NCBI RefSeq assembly: GCF_021028975.2
Contig: NC_059436.1
Span: forward strand, 35,402,001 to 35,466,000
Direction: 5' to 3'
Length of the DNA stretch: 64,000 bases
Source of the DNA: Sphaerodactylus townsendi
Taxonomy: Eukaryota
Part shown: positions 3,364-61,588 of the stretch, piece after piece
How the letters are laid out: every line of letters starts with the position of its first letter
Numbering within the stretch: position 1 is the first letter of the stretch
Notes under the pieces: generated by a model
Seen by the model: only the letters and a program-made list of their open reading frames with translations
Told to the model about the DNA's origin: nothing
Database searches by the model: none
Program-made: the position numbers and the translations under genes

Positions 3364-3774
3364 CTAGTTGACCCTGCAGGCCCGGATCATGAGAAGCTGG
3401 AGGAGGATGAAGACGGGTGCCATGATAAGTCCGTACCACAATTCATGGCTCTGCTCACCTAGCTTCTGGCAGAGAAGCATCTCAAAGACAAACTTGAGGC
3501 TGAGCAAAGTGAGGATCCAGAATAGGCGCAACACCGCCAGGCGCTTCTCGCCATCCTGGAAGAGGCGCACTGAGACGATGGTAGTGAAATAGGTGCTCAG
3601 TCCATCGGCGGCGAAGAAAGGAGCAAAGACCCCCCACCAGCTCAGTCCGGTCGCCACCCCGTCCACCTTCAGCACAAGCAGGACGGAGGCCGCCAGGAGC
3701 GCCAGAGCCTGCAGGAGCAGCTCGAAGGGCGCAAAGCCCAGCCACTGCACCAGCTCCCGCAGAGAAAACAGCAT
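3364..3774 (-). CDS. TMEM203: Transmembrane protein 203, single coding exon, 136 aa (MLFSLRELVQWLG...LLMIRACRVN)
   Basis: ATG at 3774-3772 and TAG at 3366-3364. The sequence and 136-aa length match vertebrate TMEM203, and it sits head-to-head with NDOR1 as in human. Confidence 0.97.
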   Translation of the reverse strand: MLFSLRELVQWLGFAPFELLLQALALLAASVLLVLKVDGVATGLSWWGVFAPFFAADGLSTYFTTIVSVRLFQDGEKRLAVLRLFWILTLLSLKFVFEMLLCQKLGEQSHELWYGLIMAPVFILLQLLMIRACRVN

Positions 3775-13646: not shown

Positions 13647-13969
13647 GTATGGACGGCTTCCTGATGCTCTCTCCAACCAAATGGCCACTGAAAGCCGTTT
13701 GCAGTCCTGCCTGGCCCTCCACGGGTGGCTACTGTACTCTGCACCACCACCACCCGCCCCCTTGCGATCTGAGTAGCCTGCTCATTTTCATTGACTGGGG
13801 TGATGATGCCTGAGAGCTCCCCTGGAAATATTTCCTGCTGACCAAAGTCAGCTTCATGAGGGATGCTAAACAGAACCGTTTTCTTGCCATCTTCCGTGGA
13901 TGGCTCCCTAGGGAGAGTGCTGATGCCCTGGCAGAGATACTGATGTGTTTCTTCCTTGTGACATTTCAG

Positions 13970-14190
13970 ACACCTCCCTTCCTGCCTTTCTGCCCCAGCC
14001 ATGCAGCGTCCGTCACTTGGTAAGCCACTACCTGGATATCTCCTGTGTCCCTCGCCGCTCCTTTTTTGAGCTCCTCTCCTATTTCTCACCCAATGAACTG
14101 GAGCGAGAGAAGCTGCGGGAGCTCAGCTCTGCACGAGGCCAGGAGGACCTCTACGCTTACTGCAACCGGCCACGCAGGACCATGCTCGAG
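13970..14190 (+). CDS. NDOR1: NDOR1 coding exon 8 (TSLPAFLPQPCS...YCNRPRRTMLE)
   Basis: tttcag|AC ... GAG|gtagga; 221 nt. Confidence 0.95.
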
Positions 14191-14340
14191 GTAGGACGGC
14201 TCCACAAATCTCTCTGGGTCACTCTGCACCCTCACCCTGCATCCTGGAGGCTTTTCTGCCTTCATGTGCATTTCTGCTTTGTTTGGGGCTTTCCCACTAA
14301 CAGGCCCAACATTGTTTTCCTCTTCTCCCCGCTCCCCCAG

Positions 14341-14448
14341 GTACTCTATGACTTTCCTCACACAACTTGTGCCATTCCGTGCAATTATCTTTTTGACCTC
14401 ATTCCACGGATCAGGCCCCGTGCCTTCTCGATTGCTTCCTCAATGCTG
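14341..14448 (+). CDS. NDOR1: NDOR1 coding exon 9 (VLYDFPHT...IRPRAFSIASSML)
   Basis: ccccag|GTA ... CTG|gtaagg; FAD-binding motif RxFSIASS; 108 nt. Confidence 0.95.
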
Positions 14449-14877
14449 GTAAGGAAGATACTGTTTTGTTGACGATGCAGTTCATATAGCTCACTGAGTT
14501 TTCCAAGCAGCTTACTAACCGTTAAACAATGACAATAAAACTGTCAACCTAAAAACAGGGAAACAATCAAATGCCTCTAAAAACCAGGGCTACAGTGGCA
14601 GCAATAAGGTTACCCAGCAGAACTTCCAGTGTATTAAGCATCTTCGTCTTTTAGCATTTCATCCCTAAGGAAAAAGAAATGTATTCACCTGTACCCAAAA
14701 TTAGACAAAGGGTGAAGAGAGACAGGTGACCCAGGGAACAGAGTTTGAGTAGCCATTGAGAAGACTTTGCTTCCAGTAGATACCAGTCTTTCAGACCACT
14801 AGGGAGAGATATGGGTATATTGATGTATCCTAAAGTGAAATTTTGCCAGGCATCTCAATCTAGAAGACATACTGGAT

Positions 14878-15177
14878 GCAGCAGTGGCGTAGTGGTTAAG
14901 AGCAGGTGCATTCTAATCTGGAGGAACTGGGTTTGATTCCCCTCTCTGCCGCTTGAGCTGTGGGGGCTTATCTGGGGAATTCAGATTAGCCTGCACACTC
15001 CCACACATGCCAGCTGGGTGACCTTGGGCTAGTCACAGTTCTTTTGAGCTCTCTCAGTCTTACCTACCTCATAGGGTGTTTGTTGTGAGGAGGGAAGGGA
15101 AAAGAGTTTGTAAGTCTCCTTTGAGTCTCCTACAGGAAAGAAAGGGGGGATATAAATCCAAACTCTTCCTCTTCTTC
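14878..15177 (+). mobile_element. Squam3-type tRNA/CORE SINE, full length
   Basis: A box tggcgtagtgg, B box ggtttgattcc, CORE gctgggtgaccttgggctagtcac, (CTT)n tail. Confidence 0.85.
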
Positions 15178-15563: not shown

Positions 15564-15867
15564 GAGCAGCAGTGGCAAAGTGGTTAAGAGTAGGTGTACT
15601 CCAATCTGGAGGAACCAGGTTTGATTCCCCGCTTTGCTGCTTGTGCTGTGGAGGCTTATCTGGGGAATTTAGATTAGCCTGTGCACTCCCACACACACCA
15701 GCTGGTGACCTTGGGCTAGTCACAGTTCTTCTGAGTTCTCTCAGCCCCACCTACCTCACAGGGTGTTTGTTGTGAGGCAGGGGAAGGGAAGGGAGTTTGT
15801 CAGCCCCTTTGAGTCTCCTTACAGGAGAGAAAGGGGAATATAAACCCAACTCTACTTCTTCTTCTTC
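15564..15867 (+). mobile_element. Squam3-type SINE, full length
   Basis: Same consensus as 14878-15177. Confidence 0.85.
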
Positions 15868-20061: not shown

Positions 20062-20369
20062 AGAAGAGGAGGAGTAGGAGTTTGGATTTATATCCCCCCC
20101 TTTCTCTCCTGTAGGAGATTCAAAGGGGCTTACAGTCTCCTTTCCCTTCCCCCCCCCCTCACAACAAACACCCTGTGAGGTGGGTGGGGCTGAGAGAGCT
20201 CTGAAGAGCTGTGACTCACCCAAGGTCACCCAGCTGGCATGTGTTGGAGTGCACAAGCTAATCTGATTCACCAGATAAACCTCCGCAGCTCAAGTGGCAG
20301 AGCAGGGAATCAAACCCGGTTCTTCAGATTAGAGTGCACCTGCTCTTAACCACTATACTATCCTGGCTC
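20062..20369 (-). mobile_element. Squam3-type SINE, full length
   Basis: Reverse complement of the same consensus. Confidence 0.85.
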
Positions 20370-20393
20370 TCAAAGTGCCATTTTGTGCTAGAA

Positions 20394-21748: not shown

Positions 21749-22072
21749 GAAGAAGAAGAGGAAGAGGAAGAAGAGGAGGAGGAGTTTGGATTTATATCCC
21801 CCCTTTCTCTCCTGTAAGAAGACTCAAAGGGGCTTACAATCTCCTTTCCCTTTCTCTGCCCCCCCACCCAACAAACACCCTGTGAGGTAGATGAGGCTGA
21901 GAGAGCTCCGAAGAACTGTGACTAACCCAAGGTCACCCAGCTGGCATGTGTTGGAGTGCACAAGCTAATCTGGCTCACCAGAGAAGCCTCCACAGCTCAA
22001 GTGGCAGAGAGGGGAATCAAACTGGTTCTCCAGATTAGAGTGCACCTGCTCTTAACCACTACACCACACTGG
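21749..22072 (-). mobile_element. Squam3-type SINE, full length
   Basis: Reverse complement of the consensus, with an extended (CTT/CCT)n tail. Confidence 0.85.
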
Positions 22073-32616: not shown

Positions 32617-33801
32617 ATGGATGCCAGCTGTTTTCTTGATACAGAACCTGGGAGCACAATGGCTGGGGCCCTCCTGGAGCCAGGAAGAGCCCTAATGTCA
32701 GAGCCAGCTCTTTCATGTGACCTGGAGAAGGAAGAGGTGTGCTTGAATGTGTGCCCTCCTGGGATCCTTAGCCAGACTGTAGCCCCAGATGTGGAACAGA
32801 GCTGTAACACTTCTCTGTATGCAGAGGCTGCTGAGGACAGACTTGCTGCTGGGGGCCCAACGGTGGAGTTCAGAGCATCAGTGCAGACCCAGTGCAAAGG
32901 AAGTGTCTGTTCAGAAGATCAGGCCACATACCTGGGGAGCTCACAGGAGGACCTGAGCCGTAGCCAGATGGCATTGGCTGAGCAGGGAGATCCAGAACAA
33001 CCTCCTGTTCATCCAAAAGAGTCTTCCTCTGCCTGCTGTCCTGAAGAACACTGGATCCCTTCCACAGCCCCACAGGGAGAGAAGGAAGTGATGCTTGCTC
33101 CCCTTGCAGTGGAGGAAGAGAACTATAGCATCAAAGTTGAGCAACAGCTTTCTTTGGAGGAAAATGGCACTGAGTCAGAACACTTGTTGGACACCAGGGG
33201 CTGTATCCTCAGAGGGGAGCCGGGGTTTGTAACACAGTCCTGCTGCATCCAGGCAGAGGACGACCACGTCGACGAGCAGGAGTGCCCCATTTGTACGGAA
33301 CTGTACGACCAAGACAAGCGCAGGCCAGCCTTGCTGAACTGCAGCCACGTGCTCTGTGGCCAGTGCCTGCGCTCCATCATGGAAGCATCCAGTGCTGCAG
33401 ACATAGGACGGGTGCGCTGCCCCATCTGTCGCCAGAAGACGCCCATGATGGAGTGGGAGATCTGCAGACTGCAAGAGGAGATGCTGTTGATGAGCTCTGA
33501 GCAGAGCCCAGCCGTGGCACCTCCAACTTTCATTGCCTTTCCAGCCCGGCGTCCGGGGGTCTGGGGAAGCCTGGAGCATCACTTCCAGGTCCGCTTCCGC
33601 ACCACCCGCATGGTCGGCTTCCTGCCCTGTCTCCGCTACCCGACTTCCCTTATCAACAGGCTAGGCCACCTGGAGCGCCACTGCCGTTGGGGTTACCGCT
33701 TAGCATTGGTGGGACTGCTAATCTCTGAGATGCTGAGCCTCTTGCTTGTCTTCCTGCCCATCGTTTTGCTGCTATTGCTGTTCCTCATACTGGACAAATA
33801 A
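32617..33801 (+). CDS. Unnamed RING-HC (C3HC4) protein with acidic N-terminal region and hydrophobic C-terminal membrane anchor; RNF152/182/183/186/223-like E3 ligase
   Basis: Intact 394-codon ORF. RING CPIC-x15-C-x-H-x2-C-x2-C-x17-CPIC at 33283-33429; hydrophobic tail LALVGLLISEMLSLLLVFLPIVLLLLLFLIL. A second in-frame ATG with strong Kozak context lies at 32659. Confidence 0.88.
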   Translation: MDASCFLDTEPGSTMAGALLEPGRALMSEPALSCDLEKEEVCLNVCPPGILSQTVAPDVEQSCNTSLYAEAAEDRLAAGGPTVEFRASVQTQCKGSVCSEDQATYLGSSQEDLSRSQMALAEQGDPEQPPVHPKESSSACCPEEHWIPSTAPQGEKEVMLAPLAVEEENYSIKVEQQLSLEENGTESEHLLDTRGCILRGEPGFVTQSCCIQAEDDHVDEQECPICTELYDQDKRRPALLNCSHVLCGQCLRSIMEASSAADIGRVRCPICRQKTPMMEWEICRLQEEMLLMSSEQSPAVAPPTFIAFPARRPGVWGSLEHHFQVRFRTTRMVGFLPCLRYPTSLINRLGHLERHCRWGYRLALVGLLISEMLSLLLVFLPIVLLLLLFLILDK

Positions 33802-34400
33802 AGTTTGAACTGGACTCTTAGCTGAGAGGGAGACTACAGGAACACAGGTTGGCTGATCCATGCAGATCTTCCAGCCCCGGCGGCTCTACTGTCATGAACA
33901 AAACTGCAGTTCATTCACTGATATTTATTCCCATCTTCTTGCTGAACTGAGCCATGGACCATTGTACCTATCAAGATGGTGTTAGGGAAAGCCCACCTTT
34001 TTCTGGCTTCTCTGAAGCGGAGGCTGAGTTGGTGGCCCCGTGGCAGGTTAACGTTTGCTGAAGTGAGAGCGCCCCAAAGTTAGCTCCAAAGTCCAATTAG
34101 CTTCTCCCTTTCTTTGGCCATTCAACAGGTCAAAAGCTTTTGTCTTAAGGACACACTCGCTGCAGGTCAGCTGTTGATGCTCAGAACCATTCTTGCTGCC
34201 TGGTGGGAGGAGCAATTGCAGGAGGGTGACAGTCAGTAGTGCTGCGAAGGAAGTGGAAGGTAGGTTTAGCAGGGCAGAAGTGTCACAGCTAAGACCCAGA
34301 GTGTCTGAGTGTTACTAGTTGGCCTGTGTGGAACACTGAGCCATGGAAAGAGAATGGAGTTGTGTGTGGTGGTGGGGGGGATGTCATACAGGCCCTAGAA

Positions 34401-34585
34401 CAGTGGCTCTCAACCTGTGGGTTGGGACCCCTTTGGGGGTCGAACGACCCTTTCACAGGGGTCGCCTGAGACTCTCTGCATCAGTGTTCTCCATCTGTAA
34501 AATGGATAAATGTTAGGGTGGGGGTCACCACAACATGAGGAACTGTATTAAAGGGTCACGGCATTAGGAAGGTTGAAAACCACTG
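34401..34585 (+). mobile_element. SPIN (Space Invader)/URR1-like non-autonomous hAT element
   Basis: 5' end CAGTGGCTCTCAACCTGTGGGTTGGGACCCCTTTGGGGGTCGAACGACCCTTTCACAGGGGTCGCC. 3' end GGGGGTCACCACAACATGAGGAACTGTATTAAAGGGTCACGGCATTAGGAAGGTTGAAAACCACTG. Perfect 8-bp TSD CCCTAGAA. Confidence 0.85.
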
Positions 34586-40125: not shown

Positions 40126-41880
40126 ACAGTTTTGTCATTTTAGTATCTAGCAGCATCATTTACCAGATAAAGCTTTTCTTGGGTTGTACTTCCATCAGGC
40201 TGCAAAGGAGCCTGAACATTCTGTCAAAATTATGTGTACTTTATTTAAAAATATCTGGGGAAAGGCTAGGCTGACAAACTTTGTGTCGGGTTTTATTTGT
40301 GCCGAGGGGCTGAGGAAACACTCAAACATTGTAGATAACATAATGTAAAAGTGTAATGATTCATTAGCAGTTCATAAAGGTCAGCGTCATTTATTCCATC
40401 ATTTAAAAGAGTTGTTGATTATATATGTGGATTAGACACACATGCTGGGCCTCATTTTGTACTTTTGCCCCCCGTTCAAAAAATGTAGGTCTGGCCCTGG
40501 ATGGTCAAATAAAGAGCCTCATTAGTGATCTTTTGATGTGACCTCGTTTAACAAGGGGGGGGGGCGGATCTTGAAGGAAGTCGCCTTTAACGAACTGCTC
40601 TCCGTAAACATTTTCAAGGCGAGTTTGCCTCTTGCCAGCTCATCTGAGGAGAGGAGCCAACCCAAGGCTTTCATTGTGCTTGCCTATATATAGCAAGCCC
40701 TTTGGGGGCAGTTGCAAGGGGGGGGGGCTTGAGCATCTTCCCCGCATCCCCTAATACGTTCCGCCAGTTGCCTCGGCAGCCGGGCCCTTTCCTGCATCCA
40801 GACCCTTTGCAGGAACCGCCAGAGGGAGCAGGGCTGGCAAGGTCCACGTGGCCTCACGCGTGTGCGTGAATGTTTTCCGAGGGGGAGGAGGAGGGAAGAG
40901 GCAAGACGATTGGTGCCTGCCTCAGTTGTTACCTGGCAACACGCATGAGCTTTGTGGTACCCACCAGCCGGCCAGTCTGGCGGGGCTAGAGAGGTGGGGA
41001 AGGGCTTTTGGAGCTGACTGTGCCAGATAAGCATTGGAGGAGGCCGGGCGGCTGAGTCAAACTAGACCCTAACCTATACAATACCTCTGAATCTCATTTC
41101 TTTGGCACGATGGCCTACTGACTAGGGGGAAAAAAGGGACTTTAAAATGTTATGTTGTTTTTGAGACGGAATGGTTGTAAGAAAATGGAGGGTCAAATCA
41201 ATGTTTTTGCTCTCGCTTTCCCCCCCTTTTGGGGGGTTTATTTTCAGTGTTCACTGTAGATGAACAACAGGATCATCTCTAGGACTTTCACAACCCAGAA
41301 CTGGCAACCCTAAGAAGAGTTCCACCCTTCTAAGTCCATTCATATCAATGGATTTAGGAGGGTGTAATTTTTCTTAGGATGACTTTTTTAGACACTTTAT
41401 GCACAGAGCACTGCCTTCAGACCGATCTGCAATTGGTTCCCTTCCAAAACACTGTATCTCCAAACCTGACTCTGCTCTTGCCCTGCTGTAGCATCCGTCT
41501 GCTTGATCCAAAGGCTCTATTCAGTCATACGCAATTTTTTTTGTTTTTTGTTTGCAATCCCATGAATGTGATCCTGTTATCTGAAAGGCCGTTTGCTGAA
41601 GCAGAACTGACTGCCTCAGTTTAGCTTTAGATTGATTTAAAAGAGGATTATATTTTTTTAAAAGTATAGGTCTGTGCGTGGCTATTCACTAGGGCAGCCA
41701 AATGGAACCTCTGTGTGTCAAAAGCAGTGTGCTTCTGAATCCTCTATTGTGGTGGGGCAACGCCAGGGAAAAGCTTTGGGCCTCCTTTCTGAAAACATCT
41801 GTGGGAAACAGAGGGCTGACTTAGATGGACTGTTGTTCTGATACAGCAGAGTTTTTCTAATAAACTAAAGAAGAAACTAT

Positions 41881-43254: not shown

Positions 43255-43822
43255 TAGTCATTACTGGCCCATGGTGTGACATCACATCTCAGGGTTTACT
43301 AGGCGGACTACGTTTATGGGGTGGTTTGCCACTGCCTTCCTCAGTCGTCTACACTTTAGAGCCAGCATGGTGTAGTGGTTAAGAGCAGGTGCACTCTAAT
43401 CTGGAGAACCGGTTTGATTCCCTTCTCTGCCACTTGAGCTGTGAAGGCTTATCTAGTGAACCAGATTAGCTTGTGCACTCCAACACATGCCAGCTGGGTG
43501 ACCTTGGGCTAGTCACAGTTCTTTGGTGCTCTCTCAGGCCCACCCACCTCACAGGGTGTTTGTTGTGGGGAGGGAGGGAGGGAAAGGAGATTGTAAGCCC
43601 CTTTGAGTCTCCTTACAGGAGAGAAAGGGAGAATATAAATCTAAACTCCTCCTCCTCTTCTTCTTCACTGCCAGCAAGCTGGGTTCTCATTTTGCCTTGC
43701 TCAGAAGGATGGAAGGCTGCATCAACCTTTAACCAGCTACCTGAAACTGACTTCCACTGGGATCAAGCTCAGGTCATGAGCAGAGCTTGGACTGCAGCAC
43801 TGCAGTTTACCACTCTGTGCCT
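43255..43822 (-). mobile_element. tRNA-headed SINE (Sauria/Squam-type) interrupted by a Squam3-type SINE (43358-43666, +)
   Basis: - strand head ggcacagagtggtaaactgc...gcttgatccc. The host body is split into 43255-43357 and 43667-43822 around a full Squam3 copy. Confidence 0.7.
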
Positions 43823-44189: not shown

Positions 44190-44490
44190 CCCAGTATGAT
44201 TTTCAAGGCAAGAAATTAACAGAGATGATTTGCCATTGTCTCCCTCTGCCTAGAGTAGGGGTGTCCAACTCTGGCACCCCAGATGTTCATGGACTACGAT
44301 TCCCATAAGTCCCTGCCAGCATGGCCAATTGGCAGCGGCTGATGGGAATCGTAGTCCATGAACATCTGGGGTGCCAGAGTTGGACACCCTTGGCCTAGAG
44401 ACTCTGATATTCCTTGGTGATCTCCCATCCAAGTACTAACCAGATCCAACCCTACTTAGCTTCAGAGATCTAATGAGACCTGGGCCATCC
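44190..44490 (-). mobile_element. 5S rRNA-derived SINE interrupted by a palindromic hAT MITE (44256-44392)
   Basis: 44416-44486 is the reverse complement of the 5S internal promoter region (GAAGCTAAG...TGGTTAGTACTTGGATGGGAGA). The MITE TSD is GCCTAGAG. Confidence 0.75.
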
Positions 44491-44987
44491 AGGTCACGGT
44501 GCGGATCTCTCCTGAATGAGCTAAAATTCAGAAGTCCATGTTGTGATTTCTCCACCATCCCAATCAGTTCTGCACCATGCTATATAATCCTGCATCTGCT
44601 GACCATGGAAAGAGGAAAAGGAATTATGGGCAGGGTTTACAAAGAGGCTCTCCATGTGAGGTTCTCTGAGTTTAAATGTATATTCACAGGGTTCAACTGA
44701 AGCAGATCATTGTGTAGAAGTCCTGCATGGCTCCAGAGCTGCCCGCCCACCCCATCATGCCAGGAGAATGTTGTCAGGTGTAGCTCCCATCTGTCCACAG
44801 GGGTCTCCACAGACATAAAGGCCAAAAACTTGCTTTGGTTTTTAAAGTGTTTTTCTTTTTTGCAACGTTGAGCCCCTATTCATGGGTGCACATACAGGAT
44901 TCAGCCGTAGACCTAACATCCCAACAGAAATCAGAGGAGCACCCAGGAAAGTATTCTGGAATGCATCGTTATTTAAGCAAACTTTAC

Positions 44988-46051
44988 CATAAGAACATAA
45001 GAACATAAGAACAAGCCAGCTGGATCAGACCAAAGTCCATCTAGTCCAGCTCTCTGCTACTCGCAGTGGCCCACCAGGTGCCTTTGGGAGCTCACATGTA
45101 GGATGTGAACGCAATGGCCTTCTGCGGCTGTTGCTCCCGATCACCTGGTCTGTTAAGGCATTTGCAATCTCAGATCAAAGAGGATCAAGATTGGTAGCCA
45201 TAAATCGACTTCTCCTCCATAAATCTGTCCAAGCCCCTTTTAAAGCTATCCAGGTTAGTGGCCATCACCACCTCCTGTGGCAGCATATTCCAAACACCAA
45301 TCACACGTTGCGTGAAGAAGTGTTTCCTTTTATTAGTCCTAATTCTTCCCCCCAGCATTTTCAATGAATGCCCCCTGGTTCTAGTATTGTGAGAAAGAGA
45401 GAAAAATTTCTCTCTGTCAACATTTTCTACCCCATGCATAATTTTGTAGACTTCAATCATATCCCCCCTCAGCCGCCTCCTCTCCAAACTAAAGAGTCCC
45501 AAACGCTGCAGCCTCTCCTCATAGGGAAGGTGCTCCAGTCCCTCAATCATCCTTGTTACCCTTCTCTGCACTTTTTCTATCTCCTCAATATCCTTTTTGA
45601 GATGCGGCGACCAGAACTGGACACAGTACTCCAAGTGCAGTCGCACCACTGCTTTATATAAGGGCATGACAATCTTTGCAGTTTTATTATCAATTCCTTT
45701 TCTAATGATCCCCAGCATAGAGTTTGCCTTTTTCACAGCTGCCATGCATTGAGTTGACATTCCCATGGAACTATCAACTAAGACGCCCAAATCCCTTTCC
45801 TGGTCTGTGACTGTTAGCACTGACCCCTGTAGCGTGTATGTGAAGTTTGGATTTTTTGCCCCTATGTGCATCACTTTACATTTTGCTACATTGAACTGCA
45901 TTTGCCATTTCTGAGCCCACTCACCTAATTTATCAAGGTCCGCTTGGAGCTCTTCGCAATCCTTTGTGGTTCTCACCACCCTACATAATTTGGTATCATC
46001 TGCAAACTTGGCCACCACGCTACCCACCCCTACTTCCAGGTCATTTATGAA
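44988..46051 (-). mobile_element. 5'-truncated CR1 LINE with an intact ORF2 C-terminal frame (RT FADD motif to stop at 45185)
   Basis: FINDL...KFADDTKL...WQMQFNVAKCKVMH...LEYCVQFWSP reads without stops; (TTCTTATG)3 tail at 44988-45011. Confidence 0.95.
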
Positions 46052-47172
46052 ATGTGCATGGCCCATTATCCCCTCCTCTTCTTTGACCAGCCAGCTGTCA
46101 ATGTGTAAATGCTTGGGAAACCGGTTTGTCTTCCTCCCCCCCTTCAAAATTGTTCCTGTCCCTGGATTATTTCCTGTTTATGTCCTGTCCTGGTCATCCC
46201 AATGCAACCAGGTGCGGCTTGTTGCAGGCAGGCGACATGCTTTTCTTGGACAGTGAGGTGATATCTTTAATATAAGGACTTTTTAAGATGTCAGTGCTCC
46301 TGATATGGCATGCAAGCTTTCAGGCTACACAGAATGTTTCTCCTGGTTGGGATGTTTAAAAAATTTAGAGGGGGGAATGTTTGTGAGCCAGGGCATGATA
46401 CAAAGCCAAGCCTGTAATTTGATTCAGCCTTAACCATATAAAAGAGGTAGATCTTGCAGACTAATTGAGTTAGAACTGGGCCACGTGCAAAAAATAATTT
46501 TGCTTGCTCAGGTTTGCTGGGTCACGGAAGGTTTTTGCAAAGGCAAAACCTAGTATCCAACACACAGCTGGGATCTAGCAAGACGGGAGCTATCTCTTAG
46601 CCACAGAGGCTCCTGCTGCCATGGGGATACTACTAATGGGCTACCTTGCATGCTTGTTGGCAAGATGACTGAGGTAATGGGTGTGGAGTGCTCCAAATGC
46701 TTCAGATGTTCTGTACGTTGGGATATTATGTATGCAAGAAGAGGCTTCTGGAGGGCCAGCCCAGAAGTCCATCCTAGCCCAACATTCTGGTTTGAACTGT
46801 GGCCAGCCTGATGCTTCCAGGAGGCGAATCAAGAGGAGAGCCTTTCCTTGCTTTCTGCCATTAGCGTTGGCTTTGGAGATTACATTTAGCTATCATGCCT
46901 CATAAGCACCAATGGATCAGAGCAATAGCCCATCTGGAGCAGTAGCCTCCTGTTTCCAGCAGTGGCCAGCCAGATGTTGCCTCTCCCCCAACCCACTCCC
47001 AGATATTCTCAGCGTTTCTCTCCAGCATCGACCATTCAAAGGCAGCTTTGGGATTAATATGTGCGAGTGCGGAGGGGCGTCCTGGTCCCATCGGTCTGAA
47101 GATGGCTGCTTTAAATCATGTGCCCTGAATTGATCCGATTTAATGGGATGCTTGGCACTGAATCTAGCTCAG

Positions 47173-48341: not shown

Positions 48342-48639
48342 GAGCAGCAGTGGCATAGCGGTTAAAGCAGGTGTACTCTAATCTGGAGGAACCGAGTTTG
48401 ATTCCCCGCTCTGCCGCTTGAACTGTGGAGGCTTATCTGGGGAATTCAGATTAGCCTGTGCACTCCCACACATGCCAGCTGGGTGACCTTGGGCTAGTCA
48501 CAGTTCTTTGGAGCTCTCTCAGCCCCACCTACCTCACAGGGTGTTTGTCGTGAGGGGGGAAGGGAAAGGAGATTGTAAGACCCTTTGAGTCTCCTGTAGG
48601 AGAAGGGGGGGGGTATAAATCCAACTCTTCTTCTTCTTC
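48342..48639 (+). mobile_element. Squam3-type SINE, full length
   Basis: A/B boxes, CORE and (CTT)n tail. Confidence 0.85.
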
Positions 48640-52018: not shown

Positions 52019-52819
52019 TTACATGATGGTGCAGGAAGACAGTGGGTTTCGAATGTGGCATGTGCAGGCCGCCCCGCAGTACTGGCGGAAGGTCTGATAG
52101 CAACTGCGGTCAGTATCGCTGCTCCACTGCACGGGGTTGGAAGAAAGAGCCTCCGCGGGAAGTCTGTTGAGGATGCTCGTGTTCACTGCCAGGGCAGCCA
52201 GTCCATAGTCAGTGAATAGCACGGTCTCCCTCTTGCAGGTGGGGCAGGAGATGAACTTGTACTTCGGGCAGGATTCGTAGAGGATCTGCAGGCACTCCTC
52301 GCACACAGAGTGCAGGCAGGAGAGGATGCGCGGGCGCTTGTTGGTGAAGTTGTACATGTGGCCGCAGGTCGGGCATTCCAGCGGCTCGCACGGGGTGGAA
52401 GCGTGCAGCACGTACTGGTTCACAATCACCTCGTCCGATGGCGGGGGCTGGCGATGGTAGCAGATCTCCGAGCTGCCTTTGCGCTGTCCTTGGTAGAGCC
52501 GCTCACGCCGGGGCAGAGGTGGTGTCCGAGATAACCCCAGAGCCCCCGGGTTACTGTCTAAGGCTGGGATGTCCCCACAAGCCTGGTTCACGATGATCTC
52601 TGACTCCGAAGGCCAGGCCCGCTTGGCAACCAGCGGAGGCTCACGTCGGGGGGCAGGGACGTAGCGCGACTGGGAGCTCTGCAGCTCCGAGAACTTCTCC
52701 GGATGGATGATCTTCATGGCTTCCATTTTGATAATGACCTGTTGCCCTTTCAGACATGACATGAGGAGGTTCTTAACATTACTGTCCGTGGCTCTGGGTT
52801 CTCCGAGGGTCTCCTGCAT
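52019..52819 (-). CDS. RNF208: RING finger protein 208, single coding exon, 266 aa (MQETLGEP...MSCLKGQQVIIKMEAMKIIHPEKF...SSCTIM)
   Basis: Recognisable RNF208 motifs (MSCLKG, KMEAMKIIHPEKF, EVIVNQY, RING CPTCGH...CLHSVCEEC...CPTC). The first ATG is at 52819-52817; the ORF-track start at 53056 is a TTG. Confidence 0.95.
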   Translation of the reverse strand: MQETLGEPRATDSNVKNLLMSCLKGQQVIIKMEAMKIIHPEKFSELQSSQSRYVPAPRREPPLVAKRAWPSESEIIVNQACGDIPALDSNPGALGLSRTPPLPRRERLYQGQRKGSSEICYHRQPPPSDEVIVNQYVLHASTPCEPLECPTCGHMYNFTNKRPRILSCLHSVCEECLQILYESCPKYKFISCPTCKRETVLFTDYGLAALAVNTSILNRLPAEALSSNPVQWSSDTDRSCYQTFRQYCGAACTCHIRNPLSSCTIM

Positions 52820-58859: not shown

Positions 58860-59995
58860 AGCTCCAGAGCAGGTTAGCAAGAGGCGCTCCCTCTAATCCA
58901 GTGGTTTCCTTGCAGAGGCGGCGAAGGGCAGCCTCCGGGGCAAGGGCTGGTAACTCCACACTCTCCCCTCCTCTAGCTGGCAATGCTGCTTTGGCTTCCT
59001 GAAGCAGGAGGCCGGATTCCTCTTGCCTGGCGATGGAGAAGACGATCTGGGAAACAGTGGAAGCCGCGGCAGCTCCGGACCGCGAGCCCAAGGAGCGAGT
59101 CGTCCGCCTGGAAGGGCTGCGTTGCTTTTTCCTATCTCTGCAAGGGCACAGATGCTGGCAAGTGCAGAGAGATGGGGCGGGGGGTGGGGGGAGAGAAATC
59201 CTGCCTAGATCCTCCCTCCTGCTGCGTGCCTGGTTCCTGGATGGAGGGGAGGGGATGGTCGGTGCCAAGAACCACGGCTTCTGTTCCTCTCCTCCCGGCT
59301 AGCCGAGGCTTGTGCTTTCCCGGGGGGTGGGGGGGCGTCTCTCCCCGAAGGATGCTGCTGCTCACAATCCGGGAAGAGTGTCGTTTCCAGAATGCCCGGG
59401 ATGCCGCAGGGCCTCCTTTGGGGAAATGCTCCAGGGTAGGGGTGGGGTCGGCCTTGGATCCCTTTGCAAGCCCTCTTGGGCGCTTAGCAGGGGCGCGGGC
59501 AGGCTCGCTTTCCCTCCCTGCGGCAGGAACTCCGACCTGCAGCTTGCAAGATGCTCCGCCGCGGGGGCTGTTTTGTTTCCCGGGCGATGAAGAGCCGGGA
59601 TGCCGGGAAGCGCGCGAGGGCTGCTGCCTGCTTGCTCGCTCGCTCGCTCGCCCGCCTTCCTTCTCCTCTCCCGTCTCTGCAGTGAGCACTGCAGTGATGC
59701 AGCCAGCTGAGCTCACGTTTCTCGCACTCAGCAGCCCACAGCCTCGTGGGCCGCAGTGCCTTCGCGCCTGCTGTTGGCTGCTGGTTTTTCATTCAAGGCC
59801 AGCCTCCCCTCCCCTACGCTGCTCCCACCCCCAGCCAGCCCCGCCAGCCGCGGGCTGCAAAGAAGCCCCCCGGCCGCCTTGCCAGGCCCGGCCCCCGCCC
59901 GCCCAGACAAGTGCAGAGGCGACTGCGGCTTCCTGCCGCCCCAGCGCTGACCCCTCACCTCCCTGCGGGACGCCAGAGGAGCTCCCCCCCCCCCC
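58860..59995 (-). promoter_or_regulatory. CpG island, probable RNF208 promoter and non-coding first exon
   Basis: Sharp rise in GC and CpG content, GC boxes and a (GCTC)n tract. It lies about 6-7 kb upstream of the RNF208 CDS on the - strand. A strong - strand acceptor (tttttttcctcag) at 53692-53704 could receive it. Confidence 0.65.
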
Positions 59996-61588
59996 AAATA
60001 TTATGAATGGAGAAAACCAGGTGTTCTTGCTGGAGCTGCAAGCCTTCTTATTCATAATAAACAATGGCAATAATAATTATGATTTAATTTTGTCTAATAT
60101 CACACATGCCAGTTCTTTAGATGATGATTGGCCTTTCTTTATCATTTCATTGCAATTACAATTCGAGCCCCACCCAGAGTCCTAGGACGTTGGAATGTAT
60201 CAGGGTAGTGTGTGTTTATGTGGATCCCAGCAGGGCTGCCCTTTGAACCTGACAGAGGTTGATTTTGTTGTAGATTTGAAGGTGTTTCAAATGCAGCCCT
60301 GGTGTTTTCTGAATGCTGCCCAGGGTGCCGATTACCACTGGGACTGCCTCATCTGGTTTGTGCCATAGTAACTGAATCTCTATCTTCCAATTATGATATT
60401 TAGTGACATTCTCATGTTCTTTTTCATTGAGGGATCATTATTATTATTAGTACAATACAATAAACCTTTATTGACATAACTATGAGCCGTTATACATTCC
60501 CACGTCAAAGTTTATTTATGAAAAGGATAATGTGGATTAGAAATTTAACAGTTCAATTATAAAACAAAAAGTTTATAAAACAAAAGGTATGATTCAGTTG
60601 AGATTAAAATCCAAGTTTAACAAATTTCTAGCAGATCCCGAGTCTCAGCATATTTGCTAAAAAGGTGTAACCTTCCCCATGATCTATCTAAGACGGTATA
60701 ATACAGAGTAATTGCCTTTTGCTATAGAAATTGCAATGGATAACAGTGAACTCCTTAAATCCACATTCTGCAATGTAACAGAGGTACCAAAAGATGAAAA
60801 ATATTCCACATTTAGATATGGTTTTGTATTTATTTGAAGATTGTTTACCATTCGAATTTGAATTCAATGACTTTTGGTAGATATATTTATGTCAGGTTGC
60901 ATTTCGAGACAAGAAAATGTAATCTGTAATATTACATGTCTCTTAAGGACATGACCTGCAATAATAATAATTTAGTAGTAGTAGTATTGTTTAGCATCTC
61001 AAAAATCCTGCCAACAGTCCTAAGAGGTAGCCTGCTGGCATTTTTACAAAATATCCATACCCTCTCATTTCCTAATCACCAATTTTCCCGTTTTCTTCCT
61101 GCTTTGATGCAATCTTTCTCTGAACTGCTTTGATGCAATCTTTTTGCAGAAACTACGACAACTACGTGAAGAATTGCTGCTGAGCAAAAGCAGCCATAAC
61201 CAGTTTTAAGAGTCGGAAGGGACATTAGAGATCATTCATTCCAGCACCCAGAGGACTTAGCAATTGCAGCATTCCTGACAGATGGCCATCCACCTTTGCT
61301 TAAAGACCTCTATTGAAGGAGAGTCCACCAGTTCCCAAAGCACTCTGTTCCACCACTGAATAGCTGTTAGGAAATTTCTCTATTTAGCCAAAATCTACTT
61401 CCTGGCTCTTACTTACCCTCTCAAAACACTAGACCACCCTTGCTTTGTCATGACAGCCACTACAAATTAAAAGTACTAGAGAAATTAATGAAAGGCCATT
61501 ACCTACAAGAGCAAAATGAGGCAGAGGCCCTATACCAGAAGCTGTTGTCTTCTTGCCCGGCTTGTGGGCTTTCCAGCTGCATCTCGTT

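Follow-up and report, generated by a model that had tools for sequence, protein, structure and literature searches.

Gene locus and predicted coding sequence

The window analysed here is a 64,000-nucleotide stretch of the genome of the gecko Sphaerodactylus townsendi (assembly GCF_021028975.2, contig NC_059436.1, positions 35,402,001–35,466,000 of the forward strand). An open reading frame (ORF) was located between NDOR1 and RNF208 at 32617–33801 on the forward strand, which started with ATG and consisted of 394 codons followed by TAA. According to the ORF list it was the longest ORF there on either strand, and its product was a 100% match to P0001. Sequence comparison and gene order identify this ORF as the gecko orthologue of the gene that NCBI names 'ring finger protein-like', which probably encodes a tail-anchored RING-type ubiquitin ligase (E3) facing the cytosol. 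The features predicted along the ORF are given below in window coordinates, with amino acid (aa) numbers and the basis of each prediction in brackets (AF2, AlphaFold2; pLDDT, predicted local distance difference test score; dN/dS, ratio of non-synonymous to synonymous substitution rates).

32617..33801, forward strand: complete single-exon coding sequence, gecko orthologue of 'ring finger protein-like' (ORF list, protein matches)
32617..33258, forward strand: acidic, predicted-disordered N-terminal region, aa 1–214 (pLDDT, charge, dN/dS)
32659..32661, forward strand: second in-frame ATG (M15), a start kept in all four geckos compared (upstream frame read-out, alignment)
33172..33189, forward strand: ESEHLL, aa 186–191, which fits the acidic dileucine pattern [DE]xxxL[LI] (pattern)
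33283..33429, forward strand: C3HC4 RING finger, C223 to C271, with a Pfam envelope of aa 221–274 (Pfam)
33451..33498, forward strand: post-RING helix, aa 279–294, with W280 (AF2 model, conservation)
33547..33603, forward strand: conserved block RRPG.WG.LEH.FQVRF, aa 311–329, with a predicted helix at 315–329 (conservation, AF2)
33643..33681, forward strand: basic amphipathic juxtamembrane helix, aa 343–355 (AF2, hydrophobic moment)
33685..33792, forward strand: C-terminal hydrophobic helix, aa 357–392, putative tail anchor (hydropathy, AF2)
33797..33802, forward strand: AATAAA overlapping the stop codon (pattern scan)

The first-pass annotation of the window had described an intact 394-codon ORF, and this could be verified. 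The reading frame contained no stop codon in any of the four gecko species compared, against 6–11 stops in each of the two alternative frames across the N-terminal half. The openness and conservation of the ORF are far beyond chance. The coding sequence was one uninterrupted exon in all six species whose DNA was examined (rabbit, three geckos, Astyanax and zebra finch), and the uninterrupted length of the bichir gene call, the only evidence used for that species, matched a single-exon coding sequence as well.

The position of the start codon was evaluated in the alignment of the four geckos. M1 (32617) was replaced by Ala in Eublepharis and by Thr in Heteronotia, whereas M15 was kept in all four, and the true start may thus be M15 rather than M1. 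Both ATG codons carried A at −3 and G at +4, and the annotated start sites vary among species. Downstream of the AATAAA at 33797, the next poly(A)-like signal found by the pattern scan was an ATTAAA at 34547. A promoter or an upstream exon could not be picked out by the blastn comparison, because the overall identity of non-coding DNA among the geckos (65–77%) was too high.

Selection and population variation

Substitution rates were compared among the four geckos using the Nei-Gojobori method, at dS values of approximately 0.3–0.5. The lowest dN/dS was observed in the RING (0.02–0.05), followed by 0.20–0.45 in aa 280–355; the C-terminal half as a whole gave 0.09–0.22. Values of 0.45–0.61 were obtained for aa 15–214, with bootstrap 95% upper bounds of 0.72–0.94 in all six gecko pairs. 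The comparison of the two halves that had been suggested at first pass thus revealed values below 1 throughout. All indels in the N-terminal half of the geckos were multiples of three. The lack of stops, the indels in threes and a dN/dS below 1 together indicate an N-terminal half that appears to be translated while being weakly constrained. Three DNA samples of the species showed no indels and four substitutions in the ORF, namely V218V, T275T, Y68N and L373M.

Sequence and structure of the RING domain

The zinc ligands of the RING could be assigned to C223, C226, C242, H244, C247, C250, C268 and C271. Pfam searches matched aa 221–274 to zf-RING_UBOX (3.5e-09), zf-RING_5 (3.6e-09) and zf-C3HC4 (8.2e-07), and at E-values of up to 1 they returned RING-type families and marginal zinc-finger matches on the same stretch and nothing else. 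The complete C3HC4 RING at aa 223–271 described at first pass was therefore recovered both by its eight ligands and by Pfam. In structures such as those of RNF4 and TRIM25, the RING contacts the ubiquitin-conjugating enzyme (E2) through an Ile after ligand 1, a Pro after ligand 7 and a linchpin Arg after ligand 8. The corresponding residues of the gecko protein are I225, P269 and R272. Across 169 orthologues, the eight ligands, P269 and R272 were 100% conserved, and position 225 was Ile in 96% and Val in the remainder. The RING carries the sequence features expected of a catalytically competent E3. The best solved match was the RING of TRIM32, by sequence (9.6e-11) as well as by fold, and the TRIM32 and TRIM2 RING structures matched in both ways, which come from active, E2-binding RINGs, were PDB entries 2ct2, 5fey, 8a38 and 7zj3. 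The fold search with the full model returned RING domains only, with no match for the C-terminal helices.

Juxtamembrane helices and putative tail anchor

Four helices were modelled after the RING by AF2, spanning aa 279–294, 315–329, 343–355 and 357–393. W280 in the first of these was invariant among the 169 orthologues, and G314, L319, E320 and R326 of the juxtamembrane block were 98–99% conserved. The helix at 315–329 was predicted with a pLDDT of 81–86. A basic amphipathic segment had been noted at first pass between the RING and the tail, and it was borne out by the modelled helices, by the charge of aa 280–355 (9 K/R versus 6 D/E) and by the hydrophobic moment, which reached the highest values of the protein (0.55–0.62) in 14-mers starting at aa 335–352 and spanning aa 335–365.

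The hydrophobic tail reported earlier, ending in DK, was likewise found at aa 357–392. Its Kyte-Doolittle maximum was 3.28 over a 19-mer, after which only DK and the stop codon follow. The only 19-residue windows with a hydropathy above 1.6 started at aa 359–376, and the anchor helix (357–393) was modelled with a pLDDT of 90–96. Position 371 was Glu in 168 of the 169 orthologues and Asp in the other one, while P381 was invariant (169/169). The sequence has the features of a tail-anchored protein, namely one hydrophobic segment, placed at the very C-terminus and followed by a two-residue tail, and neither a signal peptide nor another transmembrane (TM) segment.

N-terminal tail and dileucine motif

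The first 214 residues contained 38 D/E versus 11 K/R, giving a net charge of −27, and were modelled as disordered with a pLDDT below 50. The acidic character attributed to the N-terminus at first pass was thus confirmed, but the low complexity attributed to it was not: the entropy of this half was 3.5–3.8 bits per 40 aa, near the 3.9 bits of the RING, and no tandem repeat was present in the coding DNA. The region could not be aligned outside squamates and its length varied between lineages, so widely that the RING of the annotated orthologues begins as early as aa 25 or as late as aa 368 (the latter in a newt). Most sauropsid orthologues had the RING start at aa 137–226, and models in some other lineages were shorter. 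The long extension, described earlier as unusual, is thus typical of the group and not peculiar to the gecko protein. Several ape models were only approximately 200 aa long. Conserved positional islands, among them E..CLL and CCIQ.E, could be recognized in the N-terminal half across squamates. These observations mark the N-terminal half as a fast-evolving, predicted-disordered tail of variable length.

The ESEHLL motif reported earlier was present in the gecko protein. A [DE]xxxLL motif was found 29–47 residues ahead of the RING in approximately 20 of 24 squamate orthologues, and DSEPLL occurred at the matching position in many mammals.

Orthologues, phylogeny and naming

The closest matches of the protein were those of Heteronotia, Eublepharis and Paroedura, with 71–74% identity, all of which NCBI names 'ring finger protein-like'. 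The same name is carried by proteins of well over 100 vertebrates, and matches bearing it with E-values from 1e-177 to 1e-40 came from squamates, turtles, crocodilians, birds, amphibians and placentals. Bird proteins were 60–65% identical to the gecko protein between the RING and the TM segment, and their matches covered 98% of its C-terminal half. When this half and a profile of it served as queries, bichir, bowfin, arapaima, characins, catfishes and a 201-aa human protein were added. Two word-based searches were made with the C-terminal half, and among the matches listed, 24 in one and the best 120 of 132 in the other, all were orthologues; RNF183, RNF186, RNF182 and RNF152 were absent from them. 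The gecko gene and the members of the 'ring finger protein-like' group are the same gene, sharing the RING, the juxtamembrane block, the tail anchor, the single exon and the NDOR1–RNF208 position. Differences in sequence and length are limited to the N-terminal tail, which evolves fast.

Two proteins taken for human (P0109 and P0110, one labelled as such and one near-identical but unlabelled) were left out of the alignments and trees. The 51-taxon tree of the C-terminal half followed the species tree; fish, amphibians, mammals and geckos each formed one clade, and the window protein was placed inside Gekkota with a support of 99/99. Taken together, the comparisons point to a gene without introns, present as a single copy in bony vertebrates from ray-finned fishes to placentals, the gecko genome being represented by one 64-kb window.

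Annotation pipelines labelled the orthologues variously as RNF182, RNF183, RNF186-like, RNF208-like and rnf224. Such scattered automated names indicate a gene close to those small RING proteins and a clear orthologue of none, which agrees with the earlier statement that the protein could not be matched to a named member. In these comparisons it was a one-to-one orthologue of no well-studied RNF gene. The description of the gene as unnamed was correct in that it has no RNF number, but it overlooked the NCBI annotation as 'ring finger protein-like' in more than 100 vertebrates. An unnamed RING locus had also been suggested at first pass for the equivalent human position, and both the gene order in rabbit and the 201-aa human protein among the matches bear this out.

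The human orthologue is presumably LOC122513141, a tentative assignment made from the shared NCBI name. A human E3-ome compendium lists LOC122513141 (UniProt A0A2R8Y4M4) as a category-1 RING E3 missing from all screens (PMC13061254). A preprint describes its product as an unknown protein of the endoplasmic reticulum (ER) membrane, for which it predicts an interaction with PLPP6 (bioRxiv 10.1101/2024.10.01.615885). No mention of the UniProt accession A0A2R8Y4M4 was found in searchable papers. Two candidate names were dropped: RNF228 has an entry separate from that of LOC122513141 in the E3-ome tables and nothing ties it to this gene, and the literature match for Gm996 was to Gm9968 only.

Genomic neighbourhood and other features of the window

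The following neighbouring genes could be identified in the window.

3364..3774, reverse strand: TMEM203 (82% identity to rabbit TMEM203)
13945..14469, forward strand: NDOR1 coding exon, FAD-binding domain (Pfam FAD_binding_1, 1.2e-16)
52019..52819, reverse strand: RNF208, 266 codons and stop, transcribed towards the RING gene (92% identical to its zebra finch counterpart)

When aligned to the gene model of Paroedura, NDOR1 ended near 29.6–29.8 kb, so that approximately 3 kb separate it from the RING gene downstream. In three geckos, a flavodoxin/FAD/NAD-binding reductase gene (NDOR1) is closely followed, on the same strand, by the orthologue. The order in zebra finch is NDOR1, RING gene and RNF208, and that in rabbit is TMEM203, NDOR1, RING gene, RNF208, CYSRT1, RNF224 and SLC34A3 (names obtained by exact look-up). 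The bichir copy adjoins a GRIN1-like receptor gene; in human, GRIN1 lies in the same chromosomal neighbourhood. The gene appears always to lie just downstream of NDOR1 and, in tetrapods, to adjoin RNF208. The intronless, membrane-anchored RING-HC gene assigned to the NDOR1–RNF208 interval at first pass is thus found there in the window, the geckos, finch and rabbit. RNF208 is far more constrained than its neighbour, with 92% identity between gecko and finch versus approximately 62% over the conserved half of the RING gene.

A non-coding block at 40535–41092, between the RING gene and RNF208, showed 80–81% identity among the four geckos, compared to 65–75% in the surrounding intergenic DNA and 74–78% in the block of the RING gene. 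It contained no convincing ORF (the longest was 116 aa, on the minus strand) and no Rfam match, and may represent an enhancer or promoter, or else a non-coding exon that has escaped annotation.

An intergenic full-length match to 5S rRNA was found at 44396–44510 on the reverse strand (43.9 bits versus a gathering score of 38, E 2.9e-06), which is probably a short interspersed element (SINE) derived from 5S rRNA or a pseudogene and not a working 5S gene. On the same strand, a 320-aa ORF at 45185–46147 gave a weak RVT_1 match (E 1e-4, below the Pfam cut-off) and is a remnant of a non-LTR (long terminal repeat) retrotransposon. Short interspersed repeats were located at 15737–15867, 43528–43666 and 48513–48637, and also at 14994–15166, 20085–20373 and 21789–22072. 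These repeats cross-match counterparts in other gecko loci at 75–95% identity, indicating a SINE-like family common to geckos. Beyond RNF208, two overlapping ORFs rich in proline, glycine and alanine were found on opposite strands of a G+C-rich stretch (58983–60185, forward, 400 aa; 59132–59716, reverse, 194 aa). They are probably chance ORFs, and the stretch is possibly the promoter region of the next gene.

Relationship to other RING proteins and alternative explanations

The RNF183 family (RNF183, RNF186, RNF182 and RNF152) is defined by a C3HC4 RING at the N-terminus, a C-terminus with one or two TM segments, high homology among its members, and lysosomal and tissue-specific expression (PMC7313026). 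The gecko protein resembles this family in its C3HC4 RING, its C-terminal membrane segment and its intronless coding sequence, and is probably, as those proteins are, an endomembrane ligase facing the cytosol. It differs in that its RING is not N-terminal but lies at aa 223–271 of 394, in the lack of detectable sequence similarity outside the RING and of a Pfam RNF152_C domain, and in having a juxtamembrane block and a TM signature (E371, P381) of its own. The language-model clusters nearest to the RING-to-TM half were RNF183-like (0.95), RNF183 (0.95), RNF222-like (0.94), rnf152-like (0.92) and RNF182 (0.86). Architecture and language-model similarity make kinship with RNF183, RNF186, RNF182 and RNF152 a lead.

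The family could instead be an old local duplicate of its neighbours RNF208 and RNF224 that acquired its tail anchor independently, in which case it would not belong to the RNF183/186/182/152 branch. The three genes share the RING subtype and a small gene cluster, in which they sit only a few kb apart in rabbit, and orthologues have been labelled 'RNF208-like' and 'rnf224' by pipelines. The RING is 35% identical to that of the RNF208 in the window (E 6e-10) and 37% identical to that of rabbit RNF224 (E 4e-9), as good as any other match found, and since it is just as similar to its neighbours, such an origin is a live alternative. Nevertheless, the similarity is confined to the approximately 55 residues of the RING, and TRIM32 matches equally well; in the comparisons made, RNF208 and RNF224 showed none to the membrane helix or to anything else beyond the RING, and the language-model clusters point to RNF183-like, RNF222-like and rnf152-like proteins. 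We regard local duplication as possible though doubtful, and the two origins are compatible if all of these proteins belong to one superfamily. TRIM32 and TRIM2 also have a RING followed by a helix, but the gecko protein lacks a B-box and NHL repeats (Pfam) as well as a coiled coil (Pfam and model), and being membrane-anchored it is not a TRIM protein.

Whether the RING works as a ligase was weighed against the alternative of a structural or adaptor module, by which the protein would serve as a scaffold at the membrane or inhibit another ligase. There are RING proteins that show no activity on their own, and the ligase role of the family members is a prediction from sequence. The zinc ligands and the three E2-contact and linchpin positions have, however, been kept for approximately 400 million years, which is not expected of a purely structural RING, and an inactive RING appears improbable. 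Another explanation is that only the C-terminal ~200 residues are made from an internal Met, as in the 201-aa ape and human models, the N-terminal half being a 5' leader. M1 is not kept among geckos, the annotated N-termini vary as widely as the RING starts given above, and the N-terminal half evolves approximately five times faster than the C-terminal half. Against this, the frame from M15 is open in four geckos (0 stops versus 6–11 in the other frames) with indels in threes, dN/dS is significantly below 1 in each of the six gecko pairs, and the E..CLL and CCIQ.E islands are kept across squamates. Moreover, no Met is present between M159 and the RING, and the next one, M255, lies inside it. 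A short protein is therefore judged highly improbable. The chance that the ORF is a relic, decaying or without function, is close to negligible. All of the species' runs with sequence are DNA and no CpG island was found at the 5' end of the ORF, but the ORF and its syntenic copies were intact in every lineage sampled, so that the disrupted copies named at first pass as a sign against the gene were not encountered. In addition, purifying selection is strong, and the population variants are synonymous or conservative.

Proposed mechanism and significance

The protein is proposed to act as a tail-anchored RING-type ubiquitin ligase. After translation, its very hydrophobic C-terminal helix would insert into an endomembrane, in the first place probably that of the ER, and only two residues would protrude into the lumen. 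The cytosol-facing RING would be held close to the membrane by two conserved amphipathic helices and would recruit an E2 loaded with ubiquitin, using the canonical surface to which I225, P269 and the linchpin R272 contribute. The likeliest partner- or substrate-binding part would comprise E371, P381 and the juxtamembrane block. Signals for sorting or regulation may come from the disordered acidic tail, and the [DE]xxxLL motif of squamates and many mammals may direct adaptor-dependent sorting to endolysosomes.

Several observations weigh against this interpretation. No functional study of any family member was found in the literature, and the four public runs with sequence for this species, all from one study, were DNA and not RNA, as judged from multi-kb contigs spanning intergenic DNA. 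The mammalian copies sit on a very long stem in the 51-taxon tree (1.27 changes per site), and the function may thus have shifted in mammals. Taken with the short ape models, this stem suggests that placental copies changed at an accelerated rate and lost the greater part of the N-terminal tail. The [DE]xxxLL motif was missing from all birds, turtles and crocodilians surveyed and cannot, given this distribution, be essential to the family; the dileucine signal proposed at first pass seems to be positionally constrained in some lineages and not a family constant. As the most hydrophobic core of the anchor spans aa 372–392, E371 may lie at the cytosolic edge of the membrane rather than deep in the bilayer.

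The gene is already annotated in RefSeq and catalogued; it is an uncharacterised, deeply conserved ligase gene. The present analysis adds a comparative picture of this orphan ligase, syntenic from fishes to mammals, with a very strongly constrained RING and membrane helix. The near-invariant Glu, the invariant Pro and the juxtamembrane block provide concrete residues to mutate in the human gene or in that of a model organism. Because E371 and P381 lie in the anchor and the juxtamembrane block is specific to the family, it may further be speculated, although we consider it unlikely, that the family represents a distinct, approximately 400-million-year-old class of tail-anchored E3 which reads its partners within the bilayer or at its edge and whose freely evolving disordered tail carries lineage-specific sorting signals. 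If this were true, such a bilayer-reading ligase could control a polytopic ER enzyme, for example the predicted partner PLPP6.

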